Source of the DNA: Leucoraja erinacea
Lineage: Eukaryota
Direction of reading: 5' to 3'
Assembly: GCF_028641065.1 (NCBI RefSeq)
Contig: NC_073393.1
Location: forward strand, 20,026,001-20,090,000
Length of the DNA stretch: 64,000 bases
The notes beneath the pieces were generated by a model. The model was not told the origin of the DNA and made no database searches. It saw only the letters and a program-made list of their open reading frames with translations. The position numbers were made by a program, and so were the translations under genes. This document shows positions 24,791 to 50,300 of this stretch, piece by piece; the stretch's first letter is position 1; every line of letters starts with the position of its first letter.

Positions 24791-27700
24791 ATGTTGTCCA
24801 GTATTGCACTTCGCTGTTTCTCTTTTTGGGGGATAATTTTCACAGGTACATGGCATCCCCATAAACCGTTTATACAGACTAAAACCTACATCTATTCAAG
24901 GTTTCTTTAATGCGTGTCTTTATTTCCATCTGCAATTAGCCCTGCTCTTGCGTTTAACCTTCTGGTGTGAAATATTCCTAATATGGCCTGTTTTTCTTTC
25001 CTTTAGGCTCTGGGGAAACTGCAGACAATGTAAGTCAATTTCCTCAAGCAGTAAATGTCTCGACGGGCCAACATGCTTCGTTTCACTGCTCTCTTCCCTT
25101 CTTTCGTGAAGGGCCCAGCGTAAGCGTACATTGGTGGAAACAGGGTGAAAATGATTTTTTCATCCCAGGCCCTGACGGGAGAACGATTTCCGGCGTCAGC
25201 ACTAAATTCAGTGGCTTCCTGAAAATAGCCAATGTGAGCCGACAGGATGCCGGAGTATATTATTGTACCATCACCCGCCGAGGCACTTTAGTTGGCAACG
25301 GAACCGGATCGACATTAGTTGTGTTGGGTAAGTATGTTTAAACATGTAACGAATGCGATTTCGCGACTGTGATATTGCCCGCAAGTAACGTGTTTTTTTC
25401 AGATTTTAATCATTCATACAGCCAGATGAATACTATAAATATTGTAATTGGTAAATCATACCATAGATGGTCTGCATGCTGATATGTATAAACAAGACGT
25501 ATTGGCGATATTAATCAAAACGTATCTTATGTATTGGATGTTTATTTCCAAAGCACAGCATAACATCTGTACAATACAGGTAGCATTGTAGTGCCCGTCG
25601 TGAATACGTAAAAGACATATGCAACTATGATAGTGGGTGACCCCATACGATATACCATTTCGCCTGCGTTAGAACAAGTGTTTGTTTATATATTGGACGT
25701 TAGAGTCATTCAATTGTTCATCCAATTTGCGGTGAACCTCACTTTGACAATGGAAGACGCCCAGGACAAAAAGATCAGTGTGGGAATGGGAGGGGGAGTT
25801 AAAGTGTTGGCTAGTGGTGGGATCCCGTTGGAGGTGGCGAAAATGCCGGAGAATAATGTGATGTATGCGACGGCTGATGGGGTGAACGGTGAGGACTAGG
25901 GGGACTATGTCCCTGTTGCGACTGGGGGAGGGGGGGTGGGGGCAAGCGCGGAGCTGCGGGTTATCGAGGAGACACCAGTGAGGGCATTGTTTATGATGGA
26001 AGGGGGAAAAACCCTGTTTCCTATTGCATGAAGGCATCTCAGATGCCCTGGTATGGAACACCTCATCTTGCGCGCCGATGCGGCGTAGACGGAGGAATTG
26101 GGAATAGGGGATACAGTCTCTACAGGACGTAGAGTGGGATATACATTTACCATCATGTTTTTCTTCACTAGACAGCACGAGTAAACGTCATCTCTGATTT
26201 CAAATCGGGTATAAAGATTCCGTTTACATTATTATAAAAGCACAATGAACGCGCGAATCCGCCTCACATTAACCATTCGCACTCCGCGCACTTATTTTCT
26301 ACTAATATAAACGTATCACTGACCTTCATTCCCTAGTTCCGCCAACTCCACTGAAAATTTACTCTGGAATTCCCGAGAAGACGGAATCCTTCTTTATTCT
26401 CTGCGCGACATCTCCCTTTTACCCAAAGGATATCAGCTTCATCTGGTATAAAGATGGTATAAAAACTACAACGGATTTAGTTAATAGCAACAAGCCCACC
26501 GCAGATGGATTGTATGAAGCTTCCAGCCGATTAAAGGTGACACAGTATGGCCCGTCCGGCACCGTTTACACCTGCCTTGTGAATCATGTAACTCGCAGTG
26601 TTCCTGCAGCAGCTACTTACGTTGTCATCAACTCCGACACAGGCAGGACAGGTAAGATCTCTATTACCATAGAAATATACGTAAAGTTTGAGATTTCACA
26701 AAATGTTGCATGATATGAATTACCGTTAGTCCGGGCCTGAAACTATCAACCATGAAGATCCGTCTATTATAATCACATCCGCTCGATTTCCATGTGGCTG
26801 CAAATGTTCTCATCAAGTACACGCAAAATTGTATTTTGACAAGTTAATTGGGAGCTGCGAATCTCAAGAAAGCTATTCCCACAAATCTCCTCGATACGGT
26901 ATAACCGCTGGTTTTCCTTTTTCTTCAGGGGGAATAGGTTGTAATTGCCCCAGTAAAGCATCCTCCGTGACCAACTGCCCTTCATTTCTGCCCAAACGAG
27001 AAGACCCCAAACTTCTCCCAACTCTTCACTGAACCAGCCACAATGATCTCATCTATCATTCTCGCAAACAACCTGTGCATAGCCCTAAATTAAAAATTAG
27101 TGATTCTCAACCATTTGTCACGGTATCCTGTCCTTTGGATCCACTGCTTCATCCATGAGGTCTAAAGTTCCACGATCTGCCTTAAATCTTTTATCAGCTT
27201 ACCAGAATTGTGTAATATTTCCTCTTTCCCGTACGCTTCCAAATTCCTCAAAATATAAGCATATCTTGGCTCATTTGTCCAGTCTAACAACGACCTTCTC
27301 ACGTCTCCTGTTTTTTTTTAAATGTAGGATAACAGCACTCCCATAACAAACACAGAAACCATTCCCCGCCACCGCGAGGGTCAATTGTTTGATTCTAATC
27401 AAAATGCCGTGATCCCGATATCCGACTAACATATCTCGCTCTGCCGCCATGTCTCCACTGCCGGATGACATCTGCTCCTTGCCGAAAGTCCAAGGAGCTG
27501 AAACGGTGTCTCCCGTTCCCTGAACATGACATTACTTCCTACAGATCAGAAATGTTGCAAATAATTTAAAGCTTCAAATAAAGTAACACGCTGAAAATAT
27601 TCTCATTGACATTCCTGAATTTTAAAGCGAATATAATTTGTGAGTCGGACAGACGGTTTGCTGTCTCCGATTTAATCAGGAGTATCTCTCATATTGAACT

Positions 27701-29326
27701 TTCATTTTAATAAGGAATAAGTGAACACCGGTTCGTTTTTTAAAGCTGTTGTTCTCGTAGTAAAGTATGAAAAACATTATTTCTCACTTATATGAATAGG
27801 TTCAGAAAATTACGCCTGAAAGCATGAGCAAGAAAGCGTTCGGCACAGTAGCCTTCATCATTCATAATATTGAGTATAGAAGTTAAGAGGTCGTGTTACA
27901 ATTGCACGGGACATTGGCGAGGCAACATTTGGAGTATTGTGTTCAGTTATGGCCATCCTGTTACAGGAATTATGTTGTTAAACTGTAAAGGGTGCAGGGA
28001 AGATTTACGAGGGAGTTACCAGGACTCGAGAGCCTGAGTTATAGGGAGCGATTGAACAGGCTCAGACTTTATTCCTTGTGCTGCAGAAGGATGAGCGGTG
28101 ATCTTATAGAAGTTCTCCGCATTAGGGGAACAGATAGGGTAAACGCACGGTATTTTTCTCAGAGGAGGGGAATAAAAAATTAGAGGGCAAAAATAAATCT
28201 GGACCAGCGCATGGAAAGGATAGTTTTAGGAGGTCATGGGCCAAACGGCAGGCAAGTGGAACTAGTGTGGATGGGCTATATTGGTCCGCGTGGGCAAGTT
28301 AGGCTGAAAGGCCTGTTTCCACATTGAATTACTCTTTGACTCCACAAATGTTGGTGGGTGAACATTTAGGGACCAGTAACTACAGTTCTATTTGCGAGAA
28401 CATAGTTTTGAATCAACACAGGGTTCGTCCACAAGGTTAAAGTCCGAAGCTGGTGCAAGGTCAACTTTGATGGTATTCGACAGGAATTTACAAACGCTTG
28501 GTGGAGGCTTGGAGCAGACGCAACCAGGATACTTATTGACCAGCAGAGTTAATCCAGCACTTTGCATCATTTTAACTTACAACGATTGAGTTGAGTAGGT
28601 TATTTGCAGCCAAAGCAGCTTTGGGGAAATGGAATGCTCTTCAAAGTGCAAAGGCGAGAGTTCTAAGCATGCATGTTCATGCTAAAGTAATAGGTAAGAC
28701 AAATGAGAGTAAAGAAGCCCAGATGACATGCAAATTTGAGTCTCTGGTCAGGAAAAAAAGGAGATATGGGCCAGTTATAGGCAGCTGGGATGAAGCGTAT
28801 CCTTGAAGGAGTTTAGGAGACTGAGGAGCATAATTAAGAAGCAAATCAAACGGGCAAAAAAAAGGCAATGGATAATTCTAGCAAATAATATTAAGGAAAA
28901 TATGAAGACATTTCGTGAGTACACTAAGAGAAACAAAAAAGGTAACTAGACAGTGATATAATGCCTGCTGTAACCTTTGACAACCTTCCTCCCAACCATC
29001 AATTTTATTAAATTTATTAAATTCAAATCTGTCAATTGTATTTGTTTGCTTTTCGCAAATGTTCAAATTATTAGTAGATTTCTGAGCTTGCAGCGTAATA
29101 CATCAGATTCAAGGGAGAGGGATTTTCCGATTTCAGGAGCTACGATATTCATATGTATCTTATGTATTTCAATCTTACAGGTATTTACACCATCAATTGT
29201 GTCAGGATAATGTGCGGTTTAGTAACGTTACTACTGCCTCTTCTCGTTGCATCATGTTGTATTGCAAGAAAAAATAAAGGTAAAGAAAATTTAACCCAAT
29301 TAAGCATTTTGTTCAGGGAGCTATAG
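24791..29326 (+). CDS. Gene B: V(J)-C1-TM(Arg) Ig-superfamily receptor, predicted activating (about 278 aa)
   Basis: Exons 24791-24845, 25007-25327, 26337-26651 and 29181-29279. Read-through gives [15 protein letters not shown] at 29326; a cryptic acceptor at 30155 would give EGRRNV*. The frame is open throughout. Mostly missed by the ORF track because the exons lack early start codons. Confidence 0.85.
25007..25327 (+). CDS. Gene B V exon
   Basis: [24 protein letters not shown]...VHWWKQGE...[37 protein letters not shown]; ctttag acceptor and G|GTAAG donor. Confidence 0.93.
25718..26140 (-). mobile_element. Penelope-like fragment in gene B intron 2
   Basis: [12 protein letters not shown]...QHFNSPSHS; longer counterpart at 48500-49305. 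Confidence 0.8.
26337..26651 (+). CDS. Gene B C1 exon
   Basis: VPPTPLKI...[21 protein letters not shown]...GLYEASSRL...YTCLVNH...SDTGRT; donor AG|GTAAG. Confidence 0.92.
27825..28345 (+). mobile_element. Degenerate CR1 3' fragment
   Basis: [21 protein letters not shown]. Confidence 0.75.
29181..29279 (+). CDS. Gene B TM exon with membrane-embedded Arg
   Basis: [33 protein letters not shown]; the acceptor atgtatttcaatcttacag is identical to the gene C TM acceptor. Confidence 0.87.
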
Positions 29327-30146
29327 CTATAGAAAGGGAAGCTCGTGATGTCTCTTTTCTTGGGCAAAATAGCTTAATTTATCTTGTCATCTCGGTCGAC
29401 AAAGCCATTGTGGGCCGAGGGGCATTTTCCTATGCTGTGTATTTATGTTTTATGTTACAATGAGTGGTCTCCCTTCCATGAAAGTATTCATATTCGCCAT
29501 TCCGCCCATTTTTAAGTATACTAATATCCTACTGTATCGTGCTGTTCCCCTCAGTACTGAAGATCAATTATGTGTCACCTGTCCAATTATGTGTCACCCA
29601 TACTTCAGGAATCAGGTTTGATTCTGGTTCGAACAATTTGCAGGACTGGAAGCAACACAACTGCGCCCATTGCTTTCTGTGAGCAGTTGAGGTTTAGTCT
29701 CTTTCCCGCAGCCAGCCACGAATCGATCTGCAAATTGTCTCTAATTACGTATGCGCAGATCTTTTTTCATGTGTCATATGTTGCCAACCTATCTGACATT
29801 CCTTTGGAAATCTAGACAGTTTACATTTGTTTTCATTGTCAAAGCCCTGCCTCTCCGTATTTGCTCTCTGCCAGGTCAAATTATATGAATCCCAGCAATC
29901 GGGAGAGAATGCTAACTGGAGATTCTATTTAATTACCAGCGGCCTGGCTCCCGAAAAACACTGACTAGAATTAAAAGGCTAACGACATCAGCATATTAAT
30001 ATCGATTCGGGATAAAGCCATGTCTTTGCATATGATCGTCTCCATCGATCTATATTAACCACCAACTCTATGAGAACCGTTTTTTTTCGGGTGACAAAAT
30101 GCCATTTTTGTAACTTGAGAATAAATTAGTATTTTTAATTTACCTG

Positions 30147-30182
30147 GTACCCAGAAGGAAGGAGAAATGTCTGATATTAATG
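30147..30182 (+). pseudogene. Gene B dead cytoplasmic exon 1
   Basis: Homolog of 52689-52732 with the acceptor CCAG changed to CCTG and 36 nt instead of 44 nt. Confidence 0.75.
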
Positions 30183-31050
30183 GTATGTACTCAAAAATGA
30201 AGCATGGTCCTAAAAATAACTGTCGGTAGTCTGGGATGCATTTAATTGCCCTTAGATTAATCTGAAGTAACATTTCACATTTACACGCCCATGGAAGAAG
30301 TAAAGTTAAAATATCTGTGTTTGCCTTCAATACAACGGAAATTAGATAGCAGTATCGTTGCTACCAATACCTCTCGGTAGCAGCCGTTGAAAGGGTCTTG
30401 TACGTTAACACGATTGCTAGATGAAAACCCATCGCCAAGATGATATATTGCACTCACTTCTAAAAATTCGTGCCTCGTGTCAACAAAATGTCTAAGGTCT
30501 GTTAAATGCTCGTACATCCAGAGCAAAAACCTGAATGCCTACCACGGATGCATATATGTGCCGTTTTTGCCTTGCACCCACTGCATGCCCAGTAATTACC
30601 ATGTGAAGACTCGAAGACAATGGTAGGACGTCCAATCAGTACAGAATCAAGCTGCCCTCTATTTGCGCACAGAAAGAAACCCCAATGCACCCGCAATCAT
30701 CTCATTGGACCTTCTCTGAACTGTGTCGTGTAACGTTCTTGCGAAGAACGGCACTATCAGGCTCTAAAATGGATCCAGACGACAGTGTTCCTTAAGCGCA
30801 TCGAAACAGACGACGTCTTTGCTACTTTGCACACTGACAACCACTTGGAAACAGAATTTTGATGTGAAATGAAATGAAAAATCGCGTACGCGATTATTTC
30901 CGTTCAAACAGTTGGCTGTAATTTGCTTATTTGCGCTTGTAAATGCTAAGATAAAGCAAAGACGTTTACGAAGATAATAAAGGTCATTTACGGCTAGGAA
31001 GCCTTCCCCCGCCATCCCCACACGGCGATTGTTTTAGCTAATCAGATCTA

Positions 31051-32664
31051 CAGTGCCCTCCATAATGTTTTGGACAAAGACCCATCACTCATTTATTTGC
31101 GTCTGTACTCCACAACTTGAGATATTTAATGGAAAAAAAATCACATGGGGTTAAAGTGCACATTGTCAGATTTAAAAAAAGGCGTTTTTATACATTTTGG
31201 TTTCACCATGTCGGAATTACAGCAGTGTTTATACATAGTTCCCTCCCCCCATTTCAGGGCACCATAATGTGTGGTGCACAGCAATGTCATGTAAATGAAA
31301 GTAGTCATGTTTAGTATTTTGTTGCATATCCTTTGCATGCAATGACTGCTTGAAGTCATCGATTCGTTGACATCGCCAGTTGCTGGGTGTCTTCTCTGTC
31401 GATGCCTTGCCAGGCCTGTATTACAGTTATCTCTAGCTTATGCTTGTTTTGGGGGCTAGTACCCATCAGTTTTCTCTTCAGCATATAAAAGGCATGCTCA
31501 ATTTGGTTCAGATCGGGTGATTGACTTGGCCACTGAAGAATTTACCATTTTTTAGCTTTGAAAAACTCCTTTGTCGCTTTAGCAATATGTTTGTGATCAT
31601 TGATTTGCTGTAGAATCAACTGCCGGCCAGTTTTGATGCATTTGTTTGAAATTTTGCAGATAGGATGTGTCTATACACTTGAGAATTCATTCTGCTCCTA
31701 CCATCAGCAGTTGTATCATCAATGAAGATAAGTGAGCCAGTACCTTCAGCAGCCATACATGCCCAAGTACTGGCTCACCGATGAGGTGGTATGCATTGGA
31801 TCTTGGGCAATTCCTTCTCTCCTCCATACTTTGCTCTTGCTATCACTCTGATATCTTAATCTTCCTCTCATCTGTCTCATCTGACCTTTTTCCAGAACTG
31901 CGGTTGCTCTTTTAAGTACTTCTTGGCAAACTGTAACCTGGCCATCCTAATTTTGCGGCTAACCAGTCGTTTGCATCTTGCAGTGCAGCCTCTGTATTTT
32001 TGTTCATGAAATCTTCCACGGAGAGAGGTCATTGACAAATCCACACCTGACTCCTGAAGAGTGTTTCTGATCTTTCGGATAGGTGGTTGGGGATTTTTCT
32101 TTATTTTGGAGAAAATTCTTCTCTCATCGGCAGTGGAGGTCTTCCATGGCCTGTATGTCCCTTTGCGATTATTACGGTCAAAAATGCACTCTTTCTTCTT
32201 AAGGATGTTCTGAACAGTTGATTTTGGTAAGCCTACGGTTTGGCTGATGTCTCTAACATTTTTATTCGTGTTTCTCAGACTCATAATGGCTTCTTTGACT
32301 TTCATTGGCACATCTTCGGTCCTCGTGTTGTTAAACAGCAATACAGGTTTCCAAATGTGATGGAAAGACTGGAGGATAGACTAGGTGCTGAGAACCCCCT
32401 TAAACACACCTGAGCAATTACAAACACCTGTGAAGCCATGTGTCCCAAACATTATGGTGCCATGAAATGGGGGGACTATGTATAAACCCAGCTGTAATTT
32501 CTACATGGTAAAACCAAGATGTATTAAATGGTCTTGAATAAAACCTGACAATATGCACTGTAACTACATGTGATTTTTTTTTCTATTACAAATCTCAAAT
32601 TGTGCAATACAGAGTCAAATAAATAAATGATGGGTCTTTCTCCCAAACATTATGGGGGGGCTCT
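31051..32664 (-). mobile_element. Tc1/mariner DNA transposon, full length, decayed
   Basis: TA|CAGTGCCCTCCATAATGTTT start; about 220-bp TIRs with internal direct repeats; HTH ORF 31877-32341; empty site in the paralog at about 54170. Confidence 0.9.
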
Positions 32665-32811
32665 ATTACTCGCTTTTTTTAGTACTGTTGGAGCAGCAGA
32701 AGTGATAGACACGTCTATTCCTGTAATGGGCCATCGAATCCATTTTAGAGCCAGATTGTGTCGTTCTCCGCAAGAATCAATTCACCTTTGTTTAGAAGAT
32801 TTCTCGTTTAG

Positions 32812-33209
32812 TCTATGGAAGCGATTGTGCCTTATTTTTAGTTTAGATTAATTTCGTTTAGTTTAGTTTAGATATATTTTGTTTAAGTTTAGTTTAGATG
32901 AGTTTAGTTTAATTTAGTTTAGTTTAGATTAGTTTAGCGATACAACGCAGAAAAAGGCCCTTCGGCCCACCGAGTCCATACCGGCCAGCGATGCCCGCAT
33001 ACTTACCATATCCTACACAAACTAGGAGCAGTTTTACAATTATAGCAAGCCAATTAACCTACAAACATGTACGTCTTACGACTGTGGGACCCGGTCTCTG
33101 GCGCCGTGTGGCAGCAACTCTTACGTTGCGCCAACGTGCCGCCCCAAATCTGCTCTAAATTTGAGCAAATCTAGGATAAATCGAATGCCGGTGAATCAAG
33201 AAAGGACAG
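32812..33209 (+). pseudogene. Gene B dead cytoplasmic exon 2 (ITIM split by SINE)
   Basis: SMEAIVPY (32812-32835), then a SINE, then SALNLSKSRINRMPVNQERT (33149-33209); the LYAQ motif is deleted relative to gene C. Confidence 0.82.
32836..33148 (-). mobile_element. SINE inserted in the gene B ITIM exon
   Basis: (TTTAG)n tail and tRNA-like head; absent from the homologous exons of gene C. Confidence 0.82.
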
Positions 33210-33843
33210 GTACTCATACATGTACGCATTCAGGCTAGACATCAGTACCTCCGCCCTTCGGCATGCTTCGGCGTTCAATAAGGTGATGATTGACCTTAGC
33301 TCTGCGTTTACCACTGCCAACCGAAGTATTGACGGCTTTACTTATTTAGTACATATTTCATCTCCTGACAGAAAATATAAAGTGGAGAAAAAAAGTCAAA
33401 TTCTTGTCCTTGCGCATAATGTATCAAATAGATTTATATGGCAAAGTTAGACACAAGATGCTGGAGAAACTCGGCGGGTCAGGCATCATCTCAGGAGAAA
33501 ATGGATGTGGCGTTTCGGGTCCGGACCCTTCTTCAGACTGCATGCAGCAGGGAGAGTAGAGGGAACATTTGAAAGCGAAGTAAATTAGGAAAAGTCGGGG
33601 CCAGCTACAGATGACCTCAGGTAAAGTGGTTTCCCGATGGGTTGACTGTTGGCCAGGGACGGGTGTGAGTCCAAGAGGGATGCATAGTTACGAACTGCCG
33701 AATTCGGTAACCAACCTTTAGTGGAGGGCGGCGAGGGGCGGGGGGAGAGGAGGGTTGGGGGGGAGGGGTGTTGCCGGCCTTGATTGGTCCTGTTTTTTCT
33801 TCACCTCAGTTCCGCCTCCCCACACAAACACGCGCGCGCGCGC

Positions 33844-33880
<37 letters not shown>

Positions 33881-34124
33881 AGACGGGTCCAGACCCCAAG
33901 AGTCACCTGCCCATTTTCGTCATATATGCTGCCTGACCCGCTGACTCACTCTAGCACTTTGTGTCTATTTTTGGTATAAACCAGTATCTGCCGTTCATTT
34001 TTATTACTTTTAGTTGGCAGCCTGTTGTAATAATTTCTGATCTTGCGATGCTCTCGTGTCTGCATGAGATTTAAAGCAACTTAAAAATTAATTAATGTTC
34101 TTCCCCCTAATTTTCATCTCGTAG

Positions 34125-34290
34125 ACCAAGCAGAAACCGACGCATGCTAAAGTGATCTACGCTCCGCTCGTTACGGCAGGAAACAAGAAAAGAGAGCAAA
34201 CAATTGTACGGATAATGCCACTGACAACTAACAGCCAATAAAGCAAATGCGAGGTGCTGATGTAATCTATTCAGAATGGAATCCCGAGTA
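34125..34290 (+). pseudogene. Gene B orphan terminal ITIM exon (VIYAPL)
   Basis: TKQKPTHAKVIYAPLVTAG..., homologous to 58951-59118 but frameshifted. The ancestral frame carries an in-frame TAA before DVIYSEWNPE*. Confidence 0.75.
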
Positions 34291-35879
34291 GTGTCCGTGC
34301 TCAAAGTGATGTCTTGTTATTTGTGTAATTACTTATCAGCTCGTCCATTCTCTGACAAAAAGCTGCAACAACCCTCAGAGAAAGGACGAGATTACTATAT
34401 TACAAGCATGAAGCACTGATTTTACGTCAAAACTCCTAACCAACTGAGCCCTTCACCTTCAACACTTGGGGTGATATGGGTTGCAAATGATTGACAAAGT
34501 TATGTTCAAGTAAGTTTCGGTATCCATGCGTTTAGCAACTGTGCTCCCTGTCTTTGCATATCTTTTGTAAAGGTAGGCACCTAAATTATAATTTCTGTAA
34601 AATAATATGCACTCCCAAACGTGCTTTTACCGCATTCTTTCCAGTCGCTTTGCAATTGCTGAATGTTTGAAGATTAAAAACAAACATGATCAGAAATGGA
34701 AACGCTGTACATCATATGAATAAAAATCGAAACGATCAGAGACGAAACCAATCCGTCTTGACTCGGTTGGGGAAAAATAAACATGTAGTGGGAAGCCTTT
34801 TGTTGCATGCTATCAGTCAAAGAAAAGACTATACATGAGTACTATCAAGCCGTCCACCGTGTACCATTAAAGGATAATAGCCTTCAAATATCATTCAATG
34901 GGAAGGGCTGGAGCTTTGGGATTGCGAAATCTATAATATTGTAAGGGTCGGTGTTCAGAAGGACGAGGGGTGACCTTATAGAGGTGAACACGATCATGAG
35001 TGGAATGTGGTACTTTTACCCGGAGATGGGGAATGGACAAGCAAAAGAGGTCGGTATAAAGTGAGTGTGGACATTTTTAATTAGAACCTGCGGAGCATCT
35101 TTTTTACACAAAGGGTATGCGGTGTGTGGAACGAGTAGCCAGAGGTGTTAGTTGAAGCAGATACTGTAACAATGTTTACAAAACCTTTAGAAAGGTGCAT
35201 GGATATGATAGGTTTAGATGGTTAAGGACCCATGCAAGTGGGCCGAGTGTAGATGCGGCACGTTGGTCGGCGCGGGCAAGTTGTGATAAAGGGCTTGTTT
35301 ATAGGCGATGTGGCTCTATGATTCTCAATAAGTCTAACCGCAGGAAATGCAACACCTGTCCTTATACCTCCACCCTCGCCTCCATTCAGGGACCCCGGCA
35401 CTCCTTCCAGGTGAGACAGAATTTCACGTGCACCGCCACCAAACTTATGTACTATATCCGCCCTTCCCGATGTGGCCTCATGTACATCCACTGGGCTGAA
35501 TGTCGTCTCTGCAACCATTTCGCTCCTAACACTTGACATAAGTGCTTTAAGGGTGTAGGGAAGAACTACAGATATTGATTTACCCAGAATATATGCTCAA
35601 AATGCTGGAGTAACTCAGCGGGACAGACAGCATTTCTGGAGAGAAGGAATGGGTGACGTTTTGGGTCGAGGCCCTTCATTAGACTGAGAGTCAGGCGACA
35701 GGAATTCTAGAGATATGGAAGAATATGGTGTGAAAACGACAGATGTGGATAAGGAATTGTAGAATGATAACGCCCTCTGCGCAAAGCGGAGAGGGGTGAA
35801 GATGGGAAGATATGGCTAGTGGTAGGAACCCGTTGGAGGTGGCGAAAATGTCGGAGAAACGTGTGCTGTATGCGAGGGC

Positions 35880-37642: not shown

Positions 37643-40118
37643 TATGCACTTTAACTACATGTGATTTTTTTTTCTATTACAAATCTCAAATTGTGCAATA
37701 CAGAGTCAAATAAATAAATGATGGGTCTTTGTCCCAAACATTATGGGGGGCTCTATTACTCGCTTTTTTAGTACTGTTGGAGCAGCAGAAGTGATAGATA
37801 CTTCTATTCCTGTAATGGGCCATCGAATCCATTTTAGAGCCAGATTGTGTCGTTCTCCGCAAGAATCAATTCACCTTTGTTTAGAAGTTTTGTCGTTTAG
37901 TCTATGGAAGCGATTGTGCCTTATTTTTAGGTTACACAGAAAAGCTGGAGAAACTCAGCGGGTGCAACAGCATCTATGGAGCGAAGGAAATAGGCAACGT
38001 TTCGGGCCGAAACCCTTCTTCAGACTGATCAGGGGTGGGGGGGGGTGGGGACAAGAAAGGGAAAAGGAGGAGTAGCCGGAAGGCTGGAGGGTGGGAGGAG
38101 ACAGCAGGGGAGCTGAGGAAGGGGAGGAGACAGCAAGGACTAACAGAATTGGGAGAAGTCGATGTTCATGCCCCCGGGGTGCAGACTCCCCAAACGGAAT
38201 ATGAGGTGCTGTTCCTCCAATTTCCGGTGCTGCTCGCTGTGGCCATGGAGGAGACCCAGGACAGAGAGGTCGGAGACGGAGTGGGAGGGGGAGTTGAAGT
38301 GCTGAGCCACCGGGAGGTCAGCTAGGTTATTGCGGACCGAGCGGAGGTGTTCGGCGAAACGATCGCCCAACCTCCGCTTGGTCTCACCGATATAGATCTG
38401 CTGACATCTAGAGCAGCGGACGCAATAGATGAGGTTGGAAGAGATGCAGGTAAACCTCTGTCGCACCTGGAACGATTGCTTGGGTCCCTGAAAGGAGTTG
38501 AGGGGGGAGGTAAAGGGACAAGTGTTGCATCTGCTGCGGCCGCAAGGGAAAGTGCCCGGGGAGGGGGTGGACCGAGAGGGAAGGGAAGAATTGACAAGGG
38601 AGTTATGGAGGGAGCGGTCTTTGCGGAAGGCAGATATGGGGGGAGATGGGAAGATGTGGCCAGTAGTGGGGTCACGTTGGAGGTGGCGAAACTGACGGAG
38701 GATTATTTTTTGTATGTGATGGCTGGTGGGGTGAAAGGTGAGGACTAGGGGGACTCGGCCCTTGTTGCGAGTGCGGGGATGGGGAGAGAGAGCAGTGTTG
38801 CGGGGTATGGAAGAGACCCTGGTGCGAGCCTCATTTATGGTGGAGGAGGGGAACCCCCGTTCCCTGAATAGTGAGGACATTTCAGATGTCCTGGTGTGGA
38901 ACGCCTCATCCGTGGAGCAGATACGGCGTAGACGGAGGAATGGGGAGTAGGGGATGGAGTCCTTACAGGAAGCAGGGTGGGAAGAAGTGTAGTCCAGATA
39001 GCCATGGGAGTCAGTGGGTTTATAGTGTATGTCGGTTAGAAGTCTATCACCTGCAATGGAGATAGTGAGGTCAAGGAATGGTAGGGAAGTGTCGGAGAAG
39101 TGCCTTATTTTTAGTTTAGTTTAATTTCGTTTAGTTTAGTTTAGATATATTTTGTTTAAGTTTAGTTTAGATGAGTTTAGTTTAATTTAGTTTAGTTTAG
39201 TTTAGATTAGTTTAGCGATACAACGCAGAAAAAGGCCCTTCGGCCCACCGAGTCCATGCCGGCCATCGATGCCCGCATACTTACCATATCCTACACAAAC
39301 TAGGAGCAGTTTTACAATTATAGCAAGCCAATTAACCTACAAACCTGTACGTCTTACGACTGTGGGACCCGGTCTCTGGCGCCGTGTGGCAGCAACTCTT
39401 ACGTTGCGCCAACGTGCCGCCCCAAATCTGCTCTAAATTTGAGCAAATCTAGGATAAATCGAATGCCGGTGAATCAAGAAAGGACAGGTACTCATACATG
39501 TACGCATTCAGGCTAGACATCAGTACCTCCGCCCTTCGGCATGCTTCGGCGTTCAATAAGGTGATGATTGACCTTAGCTCTGCGTTTACCACTGCCAACC
39601 GAAGTATTGACGGCTTTACTTATTTAGTACATATTTCATCTCCTGACAGAAAATATAAAGTGGAGAAAAAAAGTCAAATTCTTGTCCTTGCGCATAATGT
39701 ATCAAATAGATTTATATGGCAAAGTTAGACACAAGATGCTGGAGAAACTCGGCGGGTCAGGCATCATCTCAGGAGAAAATGGATGTGACGTTTCGGGTCC
39801 GGACCCTTCTTCAGACTGAATGCAGCAGGGAGAGTAGAGGGAACATTTGAAAGCGAAGTAAATTAGGAAAAGTCGGGGCCAGCTACAGATGACCTCAGGT
39901 AAAGTGGTTTCCCGATGGGCTGACTGTTGGCCAGGGACGGGAGTCCAAGAGGGATGCATAGTTACGAACTGCCGAATTCGGTAACCAACCTTTAGTGGAG
40001 GGCCGGGAGGGGCGGGGGGGAGAGGAGGGTTGGGGGGGGGGGGTGTTGCCGGCCTTGATTGGTCCTGTTTTTTCTTCACCTCAGTTCCGCCTCCCCACAC
40101 AAACACGCGCGCGCGCGC

Positions 40119-40163
<45 letters not shown>

Positions 40164-40510
40164 AGACGGGTCCAGACCCCAAGAGTCACCTGCCCATTTT
40201 CGTCAGATATGCTGCCTGACCCGCTGACTCACTCTAGCACTTGGTGTCTATTTTTGGTATAAACCAGTATCTGCCGTTCATTTTTATTACTTTTAGTTGG
40301 CAGCCTGTTGTAATAATTTCTGATCTTGCGATGCTCTCGTGTCTGCATGAGATTTAAAGCAACTTAAAAATGAATTAATGTTCTTCCCCCTAATTTTCAT
40401 CTCGTAGACCAAGCAGAAACCGACGCATGCTAAAGTGATCTACGCTCCGCTCGTCACGGCAGGAAACAAGAAAAGAGAGCAAACAATTGTACGGATAATG
40501 CCACTGACAA
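37643..40510 (+). repeat. Local duplicate of 32552-34228 (Tc1 end plus dead tail exons) carrying a Penelope insertion
   Basis: Near-identical sequence (ORFs 33220-33450 and 39498-39728 are identical); flanked by a 63-bp direct repeat at 37580-37642 and 40510-40572. Confidence 0.85.
37931..39099 (-). mobile_element. Young Penelope-like element, 5'-truncated, with 15-bp TSD
   Basis: Intact 246-aa ORF with a Cys motif and GIY-YIG (LIYCVRC...IYIGETKRRL..RF.EH); TSD GTGCCTTATTTTTAG at 37916-37930 and 39100-39114. Confidence 0.9.
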
Positions 40511-42520: not shown

Positions 42521-44676
42521 GTCCTTCCTCACTCCCTACTGTAATCCTTTCTATTATGTCCTCTGACCTTATTTCATCTCCATGCATACGGCTTCCAGCC
42601 TCTCATCTGTCTCAGTCTTCCTTCGGATCCCCCACCCTTCCAATCTAAATTAAACCCTTTAAGGGATTCCTGTTTCTCCTTAAAATTATACCTAATTTCT
42701 GCATTATGTTCGGAGCAGATATCCTTGGCCAAAAGGTCCGTGCCTATGCTATACTGTCCTTTGTACTTCTCAAAGACCTTGCTAAAGTCCATTTAGACGA
42801 CGTCTATGGCCCTGGCACCAGCAATCTTCTTTGCTGCTTCTTCAAAATACTCTGGTAAATTCGTCTCTCATGTACAAAGCCATGCTTACTATATCCACTG
42901 TACGGATACCATTCCAAAAGCAGATGTATCTCATCCCTCCACTTAACTCGGATTCATTTGTTCACTGTTCTCCATTCTGATTCGACGAATCAAACGCGAA
43001 TCCACATTGGTATTTCCCCATATATACCTGTGTGTGCTTACGTGTGTCCAGTCATCTCTTTGTTAATTTGAGCAGTCAGGTGCGGGATTAACAACAATAG
43101 ACAATAGATAATAGGTGCAGGAGTAGGCCATTTGGCCCTTCGAGCCAGTACCGCCATTCAATGTGATCATGGCTGATCATCCACAATCATTAGCCCGTTC
43201 CTGCCTTCTCTCCATATCCCCTGACTCCGAAGAGAGGTTAGTCTACGTGGTAGTCTGGGGTACGTCCGCAACTCTCTGTAATATCTAGCTGTCTTGGGAG
43301 TAGCTGTTCCCAAACCATGCCTTGATGCGGCCCGATAAAATGTTTTCAATGGCGCATCTTTTGAGGCAGGGATATTGACGACATGCGTAACTGCCCAAGC
43401 CTTCTAAGAGAGTAGAGGTATTGGTGTGCTTTATTTGCCATTGTATCGACGTGGCTGGTCTAGGACAAATTGTTGGTGATATGTATTCCTAAAAACCTGG
43501 AGCTTTCAGCCATCTTTACTTTAGCAGCATCAATGTATACCAGTGTATGTGCACCGCTTCGCTTGCCGACGACGATCATAACTTCTTTGTCTTGCTTTCA
43601 TTAAGAGAACGGTTATGTCATGATATAAGGAAACGTCTCTGTCCAGAGTCCCTTAGTCTTTGTAATATATGGATTTCCATGGATTATTGGGATTCAGGCA
43701 TTGATTGACAACCAGCACACACGGATGTGACAATATTATAGTATAAACCCTCTAATTCAGGTCAGTACTTTCAACTACTTTAGGCATTTACTGATCCAGG
43801 TCATTACTTCCAACTGTGGCACCCGCCTTGCATATACAGTAGCTTGTAGCACCGTGTACGTAAAGCAGGACTGCGCCTCTTTGCTTTCTGATTGCATTCC
43901 ATCTGGATATCTGTGGAGTCTCCAGTTACCTTCAGGTTTCGCGTCCACAGGAAGTAAAGCAGTTCAGACTACAATGGCCAAAGGACTTATGCAAGTACAT
44001 TGGAGCATCTAGGAAGATAGAAAAATAACTAACAGTGAGGTACGGATTTCCCTGCATCCCAGCAAACTTTGCCAGGCTATTTTTATATAACCACAACTCA
44101 TACAATTAGCGATTCTTCACAGAGAATTCACCATACTCACATATAGAACAAGGTTTTAGAAACCGGTAATTGTTGTCAGTATATTGCTCAAACGAGTATC
44201 TTACTAATATTATATTATAAATAGTCACAATCATGCAGTTTATTCCGCTGTTTTCCTAATCCTGCCGTATTTGGAGCAATTGGATTGCTTATGTGAACTG
44301 ATAACCTGATAATAATTAATCGCTGAACGCCTTTATTAGCAATCAAACAGCTTTGCGCAAACTATAGAAACAGGTGTCCGCACAACCCTTGTGAATTCTT
44401 CATTGACGTTGACATAGTTTAACCTGTCTACACGCACTACCCCCTCCGCTTGCATCCACTCCCCGACACTAAACTACACTAACCGTGCCTGCATCACTGC
44501 CTGGACAATCACATTATGAAGTATTGAGTCTGGCTTGATTTCCTCCATGTTCAGCAATGTTTGGCACGTATTTCGGCATTTCCATCAGTATATGTGTTAC
44601 GGCGGCGAACGCTATTTCTGCTTGGAAAACCTACAATAGTCGGTCCAAATCCCACCATCTGGACAACAAATCACAC

Positions 44677-46358
44677 AGAAACACAGAAACATAGAAAATA
44701 GGTGCAGGAGTAGGCCATTCGGCCCTTCAAGCATTAACGCCATTCAATATGATCATGGTTGATCATCCAACTCGGTATCCTGTACCTGCCTTCTGTCCAT
44801 ACCCCCTGATCCCTTTAGCCGCAAGGGCCACATCTAACTCCCTCTTAATTACAGCAAATGAACTGGCCAGAACTATCTTCTGTGGCAGAGAATTCCAGAG
44901 ATTCACCACTTTCTGTGTGAAAAATATTTTTCTCATCTCGGTCCTAAACGATTTCCCCCTTATCCATGAACTGTGACCCCTTGTTCTGGATTTCCTCAAC
45001 ATCGGGAACAATCTTCCTGCATCTAGCCTGTCAACCCCTTAAGAGTTGTGTAAGTTTCTATAAGATCCCCCCTCAATCTTCTAAATTCTAGCAAGTACAA
45101 GCCGAGTCTATCCAGTCTTTCTTCATATGAAAGTCCTGACATCCCAGGAATCAGTCTGGTGAACCTTCTCTGTACTCCCTCTATGGCAAGAATGTCTTTC
45201 CTCAGATTAGGAGACCAAAACCGTACGCAATACTCCAGGTGTGGTCTCACCAAGACCCTGAACAACGGCAGTAGAACCTACCTGCTCCTATACTCAAATC
45301 CTTTTGCTATGAATGCTAACATACCATTGGCTTTCTTCACTGCCTGCTGCACCTGCATGCCTACTTTCAATGACTGGTGTACCATGACACCCAGGTCTCG
45401 TTGCATCTCCCCCTTTCCTAATCGGCCACCATTCAGATAATAGTCTACTTTCCTGTTTTTGCCACCAAAGTGGATATCCTCACATTTATCCACATTATAC
45501 TGCATCTGCCATGCATTTGCCCACTCACCCAGCCTATCCAAGTCACCTTGCAGCCTCCTTGCATCCTCCTCACAGCTAACACTGCCCCCCAACTTCGTGT
45601 CATCCGCAAACTTTGAGATGTTGCATACAATTCCCTCGTCCAAACCATTAATATATATAATATAAATAGCTGTGGTCCCAGCACTGAGCCTTGCGGTACC
45701 CCACTAGTCACTGCCTGTCATTCTGAAAAGGACCCGTTTACTCCTACTCTTTGCTTCCTGTCTGCCAGCCAGTTCTCTATCCATAAACACTGAACCCCCA
45801 ATACCGTGTGCATTAAGTTTGTATACTAATCTCTTATGTGGGACCCTGTCGAAAGCCTTCAGAATGTCCAGATATAACACATCCACTGATTCTCCCTTAT
45901 CCACTCTACTAGTTACATCCTCGAACATTTCTATAAGATTCGTCAGACATGATTTACCTTTCATAAATTCATGCTGACTTTGTCCAATGATTTCACCACT
46001 TTCCATATGTGCTGCTATCCCATCTTTAATAACTGACTGTAGCAGTTCCCCCACTACCGATGTTAGACTAACTGGATTGTAATCCCCGTGTTCTCTCTCC
46101 CTCCCTTTTTAAAAAGTGGGGTTACATTAGCTACCCTCCAATCCTCAGGAACTACTCCAGAATCTAAAGAATTTTGAAAAATTATCACTCATGCACCCAC
46201 TATTTCTGGGGCTACTTCGTTAAGTACTCTGGGATGCAGCCTATCTGGCCCTGGTGATTTATCGGCCTTTAATCCATTCAATTTACCTAACACCACTTCC
46301 CGGCTAACCTGGATTTTACTCACATCATCCATCTAATTTGACCCCCGGTCCCCTGCTA
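44677..46358 (-). mobile_element. CR1 LINE, 5'-truncated
   Basis: FADDTKLG and GVPQGSVLGP motifs plus tail repeats. Confidence 0.92.
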
Positions 46359-47328
46359 TCTGTTTCACCGTGCCCGTCCACCGCCATCCTCGTCGATTAT
46401 GGATTTTCTCGCTGAATAATACAAAACCGTTTCACCAAACCGACGTGACACTGAGAGCTTTTCGGTGGTGGCGAAAGCAGAAACGCCGACAACAGAAGAA
46501 CGAATGCCTCAGAAGCAGCGGTGAAGCAATTTATGGCTGTTACCTGTTAAACCCGACGCAGTTTCACCAGCAATCTCTATTGAATGGCGAATACCTCCCT
46601 CTGTTATGAACTTTAAGAATGCGTTATCTATTTCTTTGCTAAACTATAGACCAATGGGTCTCACCAATCTTATCTGAAATTATTTCGCAGATTTTTCTGC
46701 TGAAATGACGCAAACTTCCGCTATCATTGCACAACAGTGTACCGATGTTTTTGCAGAGACTAACTGAGCAAAATGGGACTTTTCTCTTCATCCTGTGCGG
46801 AAAATCAAGCTAAATTCAGTATGGAGAGCAGGGGAATTTCAAAATGGGGACCAGCGCTTAAATGTCGTCATCATAGCTTGTGTTAGCACAAGGACTCGCT
46901 GATTATTGGAGTGGAAGCGAGAAGGGACGAAATGGGCGGTGCGGTGAGGGGAGGGGGAGCGGTGGGTCGTGGTCAGGGATGGTAGCGATCCGGAGTGATG
47001 ACGTTGGGATGGCGGAATGGGACTGCTAGGGTTGGGGTGTGTGGATTGATTGGGGAGGCGGAGAGTCGATTTAGTACAACTAGATGCAAAACGCAGGATT
47101 TTAGAGCTCATCTACGTTATATTTGTTTGGTGTATTGCTTTCTCTTCATTCAGTGAAAGTCCACAGCCGATTGTGTCGCTGTTGACAGCAATGCAAGTAA
47201 AATTAAGTCTAGCCACATCGACAAGAGCCGCGCTGCAGTCACAGAAGGAGTGACGCGCTTCATCGTCTGACAATTCGACCTTCAGACACGTTCACTGCTC
47301 CACACGCCCTGTGATCACTTGCTGCAGT

Positions 47329-50300
47329 ATGTTGTCCAGTATTGCACTTCGCTGTTTCTCTTTTTGGGGGATAATTTTCACAGGTACATGGCATCCCCAT
47401 AAACCGTTTATACAGACTAAAACCTACATCTATTCAAGGTTTCTTTAATGTGTGTCTTTATTTCCATCTGCAATTAGCCCTGCTCTTGCGTTTAACCTTC
47501 TGGGGTGAAATATTCCTAATCTGGCCTGTTTTTCTTTCCTTTAGGCTCTGGGGAAACTGCAGACAATGTAAGTCAATTTCCTCAAGCAGTAAATGTCTCG
47601 ACGGGCCAACATGCTTCATTTCACTGCTCTCTTCCCTTCTTTCGTGAAGGGCCCAGCGTAAGCGTACATTGGTGGAAACAGGGTGAAAATGATTTTTTCA
47701 TCCCAGGCCCTGACGGGAGAACGATTTCCGGCGTCAGCACTAAATTTAGTGGCTTCCTAAAAATAACCAATGTGAGCCGACAGGATGCCGGAGTATATTA
47801 TTGTACCATCACCCGCCGGGGCACTTTAGTTGGCAACGGAACCGGATCGACATTAGTTGTGTTGGGTAAGTGTATTTAAGCGTGTAACGAATGCGATTTC
47901 GCGACTGTGATATTGCCCTGCAAGTAACGTGTTGTTTTCAGATTTTAATCATTCATACAGCCAGATGAATATTATAAATATTGCAATTGGTAAATCATAC
48001 CATAGATGGTCTGCATGCTGATATGTATAAACAAGACGTGTTAGCGATATTAATCAAAACGTATTTTATGTATTGGATGTTTATTTCCAAAGCACAGCAT
48101 AACATCAGTAAAATACAGGTAGCATTGTAGTGCCCGCCGTGAATACGTAAGAGACATATACAACTATGGTAGCGGGTGACCCCATACGATGTACAATTCC
48201 GCCTGCGTTAGATCAAGTGTTTGTTTATATATTGGACGTTAGAATCATTCAATTGTAGCCACATGAATAAGTTTGGACGCTAACGTTGCGGACGTAAAAT
48301 AACGAAGAATCGGAACCTAAATTTCCATCAACATTTCAAATAACCTGCATGGTATCCCGGACATTCCACCCAAAATTCTCATATCACAACTAAATTACAT
48401 TTTTCAGAATTTTGTATTCACATTTTTTATTCAACATTTCCATGTGTGGCATTTCCCCGAGATCTCAGTGTGGCAAGAACAACACATTTACCATCATGTT
48501 GCGGGAACTGCAGATGCTGGTTTAAACCGAAGATAGACACAAAATGCTGGCGTCACTCAGCGGGACAGGCAGCATCTCTGGATAGAAGGAATGGGCGACG
48601 TTTCGGGTCGAGACCTTTCTTCAGATTGGCAGGGGAGACGGAGACACAGAGATAAGGAAACGTGTGGTGTCAAAACGAGACAAAGGGGATGACGATCAGC
48701 GGGAATGTAGAATAGATCATTGTTAGCTAGGAGAAGGGAACAACAAAGTAAACAGAGATAAAATGTAAACGAGGACAGTCAGATTAATCGGAGAACTGGA
48801 AAGAGAGCGAAGGCAAGGGTTACTTGAAATTAGAAATGAATATTCATACCGCTGGGGTTTAAGCTGCCCAAGCGAAATACGAGGTGTTGTTCCTCCAATT
48901 TGCGGTGGACCTCACTTTGACAATGGAAGAGACCCAGGACAAAAAGATCAGTGTGGGAATGAGAGGGGGAGTTAAAGTGTTGGCTAGTGGTGGGATCCCG
49001 TTGGAGGTGGCGAAAATGCGGGAGAATCATGTGCTGTATGCGACGGCTGATGGGGTGAACGGTGAGGACTAGGGGGACTATGTCCCTGTTGCGACTGGGG
49101 GGAGGGGGGGGGGGGGCAAGCGCGGAGCTGCGGGATATCGAGGAAGACACCAGTGAGGGCATCGTTTATGATGGAACCCCTGTTTCCTATTGCATGAAGG
49201 CATCTCAGATGTCCTGGTATGGAACACCTCATCTTGCGCGCAGATGCGGCGTAGACTGAGAATTAGGGAGTAGGGGATACAGTCTCTACAGGACGCAGAG
49301 TGGGATATACATTTACCATCATGTTTTCTTCACTAGACAGCACGAGTAAACGTCATCTCTGATTTCAAATCGGGTATAAAGATTCCGTTTACATTATTAT
49401 AAAAGCACCATTAACGCGCGAATCCGCCTCACATTAACCATTCACTCTCCGCGCACTTATTTTCTACTAATATAAACGTATCACTGACCTTCATTCCCTA
49501 GTTCCGCCAACTCCACTGAAAATTTACTCTGGAATTCCCGAGAAGACGGAATCCTTCTTTATTCTCTGCGCGACATCTCCCTTTTACCCAAAGGATATCA
49601 GCTTCATCTGGTATAAAGATGGTATAAAAACTACAACGGATTTAGATAATAGCAACAAGCTCACCGCAGATGGATTGTTTGAAGCTTCCAGCCGATTAAA
49701 GGTGACACAGTATGGCCCGACCGGCACCGTTTACACCTGCCTTGTGAATCATGTAACTCACCGTGTTCCTGCAGCAGCTACTTACGTTGTCATCAACTCC
49801 GACACAGGTAAGACTGTGTATCGCTATTACCATAGAAAGATACTTAAAGTTTGAGATTTCACAAAATGTCGCATGATATGAATTACCGTTAGTCCTGGCC
49901 TGAAACTTTCAACCTTGAAGATCCCTCTATTATAATCACATCCGCTGGAATTCCATGTGGCCTCAAATGCTCTCATCAAGTACACGCAAAATTGTCTTTT
50001 GACAAATTTCATTGGGAGCTGCTACCTCCAACATGTCAGGCGCTGCACTCCGATTCTGAAGAAAGCTACTCCTACAAATCTCCTCGATACGGTATAACCG
50101 CTGGTTTTCCTTTTTCTTCTGGGGAAATGGGTTGTAATTGCCCCAGTAAAGCATCCCCCGTGACCAATTGCCCTTCATTTCTGCCCAAACGAGAAGACCC
50201 CAAATTCTCCCAACTCTTCACTGAACCGGCCCTATGATCTCGTAATTCTCGCAAACAACCTGTGCACAGACCTAAATTAAAAGTAGTGATTTTCAAGCAT

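Follow-up and report, generated by a model that had tools for sequence, protein, structure and literature searches.

We analysed a 64-kb window of the little skate Leucoraja erinacea (the whole stretch of 64,000 nucleotides, positions 20,026,001 to 20,090,000 of contig NC_073393.1), which contains three tandem receptor genes that we call A, B and C. We focus on gene B, whose transmembrane (TM) exon encodes an Arg with an Asn three residues ahead of it, at positions where gene C has Cys and Ile, and in which every homologue of the gene C tail exons is disabled. We tentatively propose, as a reading that we hold at somewhat less than an even chance, that gene B is the adaptor-coupled activating counterpart of the inhibitory gene C. 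As far as its sequence allows an analogy, gene B seems to have the design of activating receptors of the Arg type, which form complexes with zeta/gamma dimers.

The transmembrane exon of gene B

The leader, V, C1 and TM exons of gene B are all open and have canonical splice sites. Their positions are given below, together with those of the two codons of interest and of the homologous TM exon of gene C.

24791 to 24845, + strand: gene B leader exon, 18 residues, phase-1 end, donor GTACAT
25007 to 25327, + strand: gene B V exon, with a J-like end
26337 to 26651, + strand: gene B C1-type immunoglobulin (Ig) exon
29181 to 29279, + strand: gene B stalk/TM exon, the fourth exon, 99 nucleotides (nt), canonical acceptor and donor
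29195 to 29197, + strand: Asn codon AAT (ATT, Ile, in gene C), three residues ahead of the Arg
29204 to 29206, + strand: Arg codon AGG (TGC, Cys, in gene C; two base changes), alignment column 394
51390 to 51494, + strand: gene C stalk/TM exon, uncharged, ancestral-type

The acceptor AG of the gene B TM exon lies at 29179-80 (...tcaatcttacAG) and its donor GT at 29280-81 (GTAAAG), and the exon is in phase 1 at both ends. The TM peptide claimed in the initial annotation of this sequence is the exact + strand product of 29181-29279. The same annotation had noted that the TM of gene C lacks an Arg, and this is correct: exon 51390-51494 encodes an uncharged helix in which a Cys aligns with the Arg of gene B. 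The surroundings of the exon resemble those in gene C: the two genes agree at 20 of the 21 nt ahead of the acceptor and, in the vicinity of the donor, at 28 of 36 nt. Searches with C-type, A-type and Arg-type TM queries detected no second TM exon in gene B.

Loss of the cytoplasmic tail

The tail exons of gene C and the corresponding pieces of gene B are the following (ITIM, immunoreceptor tyrosine-based inhibitory motif).

52689 to 52732, + strand: gene C tail exon 1, 15 residues, in agreement with the Amblyraja protein XP_032892405.1
54347 to 54454, + strand: gene C ITIM exon, in agreement with XP_032892405.1
58951 to 59118, + strand: gene C last exon, TKQKPMPGKVIYAPV...GIYSEWIPK and a stop
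29280 to 29326, + strand: gene B donor read-through tail, from the phase-1 G at 29279; 15 residues, stop at 29324-26
30143 to 30188, + strand: gene B tail exon 1 remnant (homologue of gene C 52689-52732), acceptor CAG changed to CTG, 8 bp deleted
32812 to 32841, + strand: gene B ITIM exon remnant, SMEAIVPYF, then TAG, then an unrelated inserted repeat
34125 to 34241, + strand: gene B last tail exon homologue, own frame TKQKPTHAKVIYAPL..., later a 1-bp frameshift relative to gene C

All three tail exon homologues of gene B are disabled, and the protein therefore ends shortly beyond the membrane, without tyrosines. Three such endings had been put forward in the initial annotation, and we could reproduce each of them: the 15-residue read-through of the TM donor; the use of a cryptic AG (30153-54) in the tail exon 1 remnant, which gives EGRRNV and a stop; and the splicing of the TM exon to 34125, which is out of frame and gives DQAETDAC and a stop at 34148-50. 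The last of these is the C-terminus of the RefSeq protein XP_055505064.1. Beyond the membrane-flanking RKNK, the tails add 6, 8 or 15 residues, none of them Tyr. Gene B thus has what is expected of adaptor-coupled receptors, namely a short tail devoid of ITIM, of immunoreceptor tyrosine-based switch motif (ITSM) and of immunoreceptor tyrosine-based activation motif (ITAM). An AATAAA is found at 34237, within the homologue of the last tail exon. Even if gene B were merely decaying, these results correct the RefSeq model, whose C-terminus is an out-of-frame dead exon.

Genes B and C each contain a tandem duplication of the tail module, which consists of the ITIM exon and the last exon. In gene B, a second ITIM remnant at 37901-37930 carries the same VPYF-TAG stop, and the last tail exon is duplicated at 40408. 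In gene C, the duplicates are found at 54347-54454 and ~58460 (ITIM) and at ~54900 and 58951-59118 (last exon), with one copy of each being intact and the other damaged. The dead tail region of gene B also contains a Tc1/mariner-like open reading frame (31877-32341, minus strand).

Origin of the arginine

The TM exons of genes B and C differ at 29 of 96 aligned nt (19 of these differences being in the first half) and at 17 of 32 residues. The TM of Amblyraja is that of gene C, and the TM of Mobula is DVMTSICALSGLVSILLVFLIAKRC. Because gene C, Amblyraja and Mobula carry Cys where gene B has Arg, the alignment indicates that the C-type TM is the conserved state and that the Arg of gene B is derived. 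On this polarity, the Asn arose from Ile (ATT to AAT), the Arg from a Cys that is widely kept in the family (TGC to AGG), and the ancestral KR past the helix became SC in gene B.

The Cys in the upper TM that is common to many members (in the 'GC' of LISGCAGG; columns 392-397, corresponding to 29198-29215) is the residue replaced by the Arg; it might serve in dimerisation. In gene B, new Cys residues stand at positions -2 and +3 relative to the Arg.

Recurrence of arginine in the family

We aligned 16 family members with MAFFT. Four proteins have an Arg at column 393, next to the column of the gene B Arg (394); in their relatives, column 393 is occupied by Gly, Ala, Ser or Ile.

XP_072926686.1, Hemitrygon akajei: TM start LLISRCVW..., Arg at column 393
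XP_059849417.1, Hypanus sabinus: TM start VWILRCAM..., Arg at column 393
XP_059849425.1, Hypanus sabinus: TM start WVPRSAMG..., Arg at column 393
XP_067906086.1, Heterodontus francisci: TM start LLISRCAW..., Arg at column 393

The tails of these four proteins are ~30-36 residues long and lack canonical ITIMs; two of them are Tyr-free, and those of XP_059849417.1 and XP_067906086.1 retain tyrosines. Their nearest relatives have Gly, Ala or Ser at this column and ITIM tails. In a tree of the C1 domain only, five changes are required to account for the five Arg rows, and well-supported branches force at least four of these, although homogenisation of the ectodomains may inflate this count. The TMs of the Arg-bearing members are closer to those of their local ITIM-bearing partners than to one another (e.g., WVPRSAMGGLSFLLL versus WVPGCAVGGLAFLLL). 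Judging from these comparisons, the combination of an upper-TM Arg with the loss of canonical ITIMs recurs in the family, and gene B is one more case, slightly shifted. One may go further and suppose that the family, whose architecture is that of an antigen receptor, repeatedly turns inhibitory members into activators coupled to zeta/gamma-type adaptors by giving the upper TM an Arg. Gene B would be such a conversion caught midway, with ITIM exons that are dead but can still be recognised, a new Asn-x-x-Arg and an ectodomain kept identical to that of gene C. Non-rearranging VJ-C1 receptors would then have used Arg-Asp-Asp assembly in the membrane as early as the oldest jawed vertebrates. We regard this broader scenario as speculative and, as a whole, rather unlikely.

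Constraint or decay of gene B

Several observations weigh against an activating gene B; those that concern the health of the gene are discussed here and those that concern the depth of the Arg in the following section. They start with the TM exon itself, whose ratio of nonsynonymous to synonymous differences per site (pN/pS) relative to gene C is 1.1. Its 17 amino-acid changes match the neutral expectation, and its sequence as such is therefore unconstrained; its divergence from gene C is about that of the flanking intron. A 1669-nt contig of a related genome (assembled from one DNA run), which covers 28621-30012 at ~94% identity, points in the same direction. The differences listed for the exon are 29184 T>C (Ile>Thr), 29190 C>T (Thr>Ile) and 29222 G>A (Val>Ile), all nonsynonymous, though conservative, with none synonymous, and by the differences listed the conservation of the exon does not exceed that of the flanking sequence. 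The 'YT' of the motif reads TYI in this genome, i.e., it is not shared. By the same listing N-x-x-R is shared: among the differences listed, none falls on the Asn or Arg codon and none is an indel in the exon. The listing appears complete up to 29690, the absence of further differences being probable rather than certain.

Expression gives no help to the gene either. We read 5-25% of each of three RNA-seq runs from three studies over 28400-34399. In these three partly read runs, whose tissues are unspecified, depth is zero over 28600-28799, 29000-29399 (which covers the TM exon) and 29600-30799, with few reads at 28800-28999 and 29400-29599 and sparse coverage in the remaining unique sequence. 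Since the tissues are unspecified, this zero depth is absence of evidence only. Among the Logan-indexed RNA runs, none was found to hold gene B exons, and a word search among short transcript-derived protein fragments, made with the C1 exon alone, gave no candidate. As to the partner chain, cd247 is expressed in the T cells of the bamboo shark, for which it serves as a marker (PMC11372145), and a survey of 2014 did not find FcR-gamma in the shark data then available (PMC4016189).

The transposon-derived stretches 31000-33200, 33400-33600 and 33800-34000, inside the dead tail region of gene B, attract RNA reads by the hundreds in each of the three runs, on either strand. These reads stem from genome-wide repeat families and not from the gene B locus.

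The ectodomain of gene B has a different history. DNA identity between genes B and C is 92-96% in four blocks that run from the promoter through V (B 21817-25717; 96% in the V block, 24578-25717), 91% across C1 (B 25714-27265), and about 70-80% from 27269 on (70% in the TM exon and 73-81% in the tail remnants). The homogenised block (21817-27265 in B versus 42693-50452 in C) stops ~600 bp past the C1 exon, beyond which identity is ~70%. Such a sharp boundary is of the kind that would be expected from gene conversion, and this process probably keeps the promoter, V and C1 of the two genes alike. Between the V exons there are five differences in 318 nt compared (four synonymous and one nonsynonymous; pN/pS 0.08), and the sole amino-acid change can be assigned to the gene C side because Amblyraja agrees with B. 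The C1 exons show one synonymous and seven nonsynonymous differences. A homogenised ectodomain atop old and divergent membrane and tail modules is, in terms of these identities, the usual picture of paired receptors, but gene conversion would yield the same picture of B and C were gene B dead.

Gene B could thus be a decaying duplicate, in which the TM exon drifts, the Arg and the Asn are neutral, and V and C1 look healthy only as a result of their continual replacement, through gene conversion, by gene C sequence. The state of the tail exons (lost acceptor, deletion, stop, insertion and frameshift) and the C1 differences are in line with such decay, as are the substitutions in the TM exon and the RNA results. 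Decay accounts less well for four consecutive open exons with intact splice sites, for the near-identity of the acceptor flank with that of gene C, for a lone nonsynonymous V difference that arose in gene C rather than in B, and for the recurrence of an upper-TM Arg without canonical ITIM in annotated genes of other species. It also has to explain why the TM exon still encodes a helix. We placed 29 random substitutions on the C-type exon, in a post hoc simulation that assumes all change to be on the B side, and 51% of the exons gained a stop. An exon free of stops after this many substitutions is thus expected in 49% of cases, and only 1.7% of the simulations both stayed open and kept a 19-residue span as hydrophobic as that of gene B. 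An activating-type helix, uncharged but for one basic residue among its first eight positions, came out of only 2.5% of simulations, and in 0.26% there was also an Asn at i-3. By these frequencies, the hydrophobic character of the exon appears to be under constraint. Taking both sides together, we consider the decay of gene B possible but rather unlikely.

Position of the arginine in the membrane

The Arg is preceded by I-Y-T-I-N-C-V and followed by 20 uncharged residues and then by RKNK. With summed Hessa-scale values, the best 19-residue window starts directly after the Arg, and the best 23-residue window holds the Arg two residues in. About 16 hydrophobic residues follow the Arg in CD89 and NKp46. 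The other Arg-bearing members of the family have 16-17, and there the Arg must therefore be buried. The longer run of gene B, which exists because the ancestral KR became SC, means that its Arg may sit at the membrane edge; a helix of this composition can cross the bilayer while leaving the Arg unburied. In the ancestral register, on the other hand, the position of the Arg is 15 residues from the cytoplasmic boundary. Placement matters in CD89. For assembly, this receptor depends on the Arg of its QNLIR, close to the upper end of the TM, as well as on the two aspartates of the gamma dimer; this Arg can be moved by one helical turn but not by one residue, and a correctly placed basic residue is enough even in a poly-Leu helix (PMC13107469). 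The Arg of gene B is one residue off column 393, and a one-residue shift abolished assembly in CD89.

These features would suit an expressed, tail-less and non-signalling decoy or adhesion form, comparable to SIRP-gamma, in which the Arg is interfacial and binds no adaptor. The best 19-residue window excludes the Arg, the change of KR to SC lengthened the hydrophobic run on the cytoplasmic side, the Arg is off the column of the other Arg-bearing members, and the family includes short-tailed members with uncharged TMs (P0069, P0166, P0160 and P0152). The context of an Asn, two hydrophobic residues and an Arg is nonetheless that of CD89, whose Arg is in the membrane, and the ancestral register leaves a span of 15 residues below the Arg. 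Moreover, arginines on the extracellular side oppose the positive-inside rule, and the joint presence of Asn and Arg is rare under drift, as seen in the simulations. We find a decoy unlikely.

Gene B might also act mainly as a secreted V-C1 protein, through skipping of the TM exon or an early end of the transcript, in which case the Arg would be irrelevant. As the C1 exon has a phase-1 end like that of the TM exon, skipping the latter would join C1 to 34125 in the same out-of-frame reading, with a quick stop. In line with skipping, XP_032892405.1 joins its B-like C1 straight to a further C1 and a C-type TM, without a B-type TM exon. The strong canonical splice sites of the TM exon, its conserved acceptor flank and its inclusion in the RefSeq skate model all speak for its use, and we judge a mainly secreted product very unlikely.

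A model for gene B and its implications

In the adaptor-coupled model that we tentatively favour, gene B would be the ITIM-less partner of the inhibitory gene C. The sequence shows that its three tail exons died, that the upper-TM Cys became Arg and that a new Asn appeared one turn above it (N-C-V-R). In the model, the Arg would lie in the outer leaflet and, like its counterparts in CD89, NKp46 and TCR-alpha, pair with the aspartates of a disulfide-linked dimer of CD3-zeta/FcR-gamma-type ITAM adaptors. Ligands that inhibit through gene C would then activate through gene B.

The initial annotation had suggested that an activating TM arose in this family, possibly convergently. The derived Arg, the Tyr-free tails, the disabled tail exons, the CD89-like context of the Arg and the recurrence in the family support this suggestion; the pN/pS of 1.1, the lack of reads on the TM exon in the three RNA runs and an Arg that may sit at the membrane edge lend it no support. 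Should gene B and the other Arg-bearing members indeed signal through a zeta/gamma-like chain, germline VJ-C1 receptors of cartilaginous fish would already have relied on such membrane assembly, and gene B would offer a dated case of an inhibitory receptor turned activating.

Gene models and the receptor family

We made homology searches with single exons and with the full-length XP_055505064.1 as a long query. A HMMER scan with the C1 exon identified gene B as this RefSeq protein (319 residues, 100% identical), which carries the name 'tyrosine-protein phosphatase non-receptor type substrate 1-like'. The RefSeq model includes the V, C1 and TM exons of gene B but differs at the 5' end: its residues 1-66 (MATLAIALIDAVF...WALKLA) bypass the leader exon 24791-24845. 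This exon matches the leaders of other family members, and the prediction is probably wrong at the 5' end of the model, just as at the out-of-frame 3' end.

The other two genes of the window are located as follows.

Gene A: V near 5521, C1 near 8032, TM near 11540
Gene C, + strand: V at 47520, C1 at 49501, TM at 51390-51494

The TM exon of gene A (STYFLIYGCATGGIIFILLLIITMVCRHIKRSKRE, 11540-11693) abuts an assembly gap (11694-12194), and its donor site is therefore not visible. Its ITIM exon lies near 15900-16010 (CSYAALDL, TTYAEV). A scan of 20000-64000 with Rfam gave zero matches.

By its domains, gene B belongs to a chondrichthyan family of non-rearranging V(J-like)-C1-TM receptors, most of which have ITIM tails. 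In the alignment, gene B has all the hallmarks of this family: a V end of the type GNGTGS-L-V, a single C1 (with the Y-C-V-H motif) and a single stalk/TM exon. Its identity with the listed members from sharks, rays and chimaeras is 32-59% (E values from 1e-22 down to 1e-199), and with the Amblyraja radiata model XP_032892405.1 it is 97%. Relatives are found in Amblyraja, Mobula, Hemitrygon, Hypanus, Heterodontus, Scyliorhinus, Mustelus, Heptranchias, Chiloscyllium, Hemiscyllium, Pristis and Callorhinchus, under automatic names such as SIRP-alpha-like, tapasin-related-like, Ig lambda-like and NCR3LG1-like. The typical TM of the family is YLLISGCAGGLVFLLLLIIIGKRC, followed in most members by two to four YxxL/V motifs. 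A literature search found no paper describing the V(J-like)-C1-TM family, which is thus annotated in RefSeq yet undescribed.

XP_032892405.1 is a V-C1-C1-TM protein, in which the first C1 is B-like and the TM and tail are C-type. This model may be a fusion of the B and C orthologues; alternatively, a real two-C1 form might exist in the thorny skate.

By sequence, the best solved-structure relatives of the gene B C1 are the constant domains of shark UrIg2 and IgM, with MHC also matched; the UrIg2 structure 9dmx is the top solved match (E 3.6e-15), and SIRP is absent among the best 60 solved relatives. The C1 of gene A matches SIRP-alpha (its second-best match in the PDB) and also SIRP-gamma. 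A CD79-like identity, prompted by a WWKQ motif and the J-like end, could be ruled out by the C1 domain and by tails with ITIM rather than ITAM.

Comparison with known systems

The upper-TM arginine is the means by which NKp46, LILRA, GPVI and OSCAR couple to FcR-gamma or CD3-zeta. The initial annotation had likened the YTxNxxR of gene B to these receptors. The likeness stands for the core of the motif, an Asn, two hydrophobic residues and an Arg (NCVR in gene B, NLIR in the QNLIR of CD89), and CD89 also has a short motif-free tail and a Tyr-Thr shortly upstream. It does not extend to homology with LILRA, GPVI or NKp46. Gene B has V and C1 domains instead of the C2 domains typical of the leukocyte receptor complex (LRC), one residue fewer between YT and Asn, a YT that is not kept in the related genome, and 20 instead of about 16 hydrophobic residues after the Arg. 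Homology with LRC receptors (LILRA, KIR, CD89, GPVI, OSCAR and NKp46) is ruled out by the domain type, the spacing and the origin of the motif by point changes from the C-type NYVMISIC. On these grounds, the resemblance of gene B to LRC receptors reads as convergent or due to chance, not as common descent.

UrIg2 is also a non-rearranging gene of cartilaginous fish with a J-like V end and C1 domains. It has nine C1 domains, where the gene B family has one, which rules out that gene B is a UrIg; the UrIg2 paper mentions neither an ITIM nor a charged TM residue, whereas the gene B family has ITIM or short tails. In TCR-alpha and TCR-delta, too, a V with a J-like end and a C1 are followed by a short connecting peptide and by a TM whose upper end holds an Arg; in the TCR this Arg contacts the zeta-zeta dimer (PMC13107469). 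Gene B differs from them in being non-rearranging, in lacking a split V and a second basic residue for the CD3 dimers, and in having a recently derived Arg. The members with Arg at column 393 share with gene B the V-C1-TM structure, an Arg placed within the initial TM turns, the lack of canonical ITIMs and close relatives with ITIM tails, but their Arg stands one column earlier (LLISRC, VWILRC) and the conserved Cys is kept, whereas the Arg of gene B replaces it.

The arrangement of genes B and C can be compared with that of the SIRPs, given the near-identical ectodomains of an ITIM-bearing gene and its tail-less neighbour. The tail motifs of gene C resemble the YAxLN and YAxV of SIRP-alpha; SIRP-beta has a mid-membrane Lys for DAP12 and SIRP-gamma an uncharged TM. 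That gene B is a SIRP proper is not borne out, since it has a single C1 and SIRP is missing from the best matches of this domain; genes A, B and C have one C1 exon each rather than the V-C1-C1 of SIRPs. By analogy, gene B would relate to gene C much as SIRP-beta does to SIRP-alpha.

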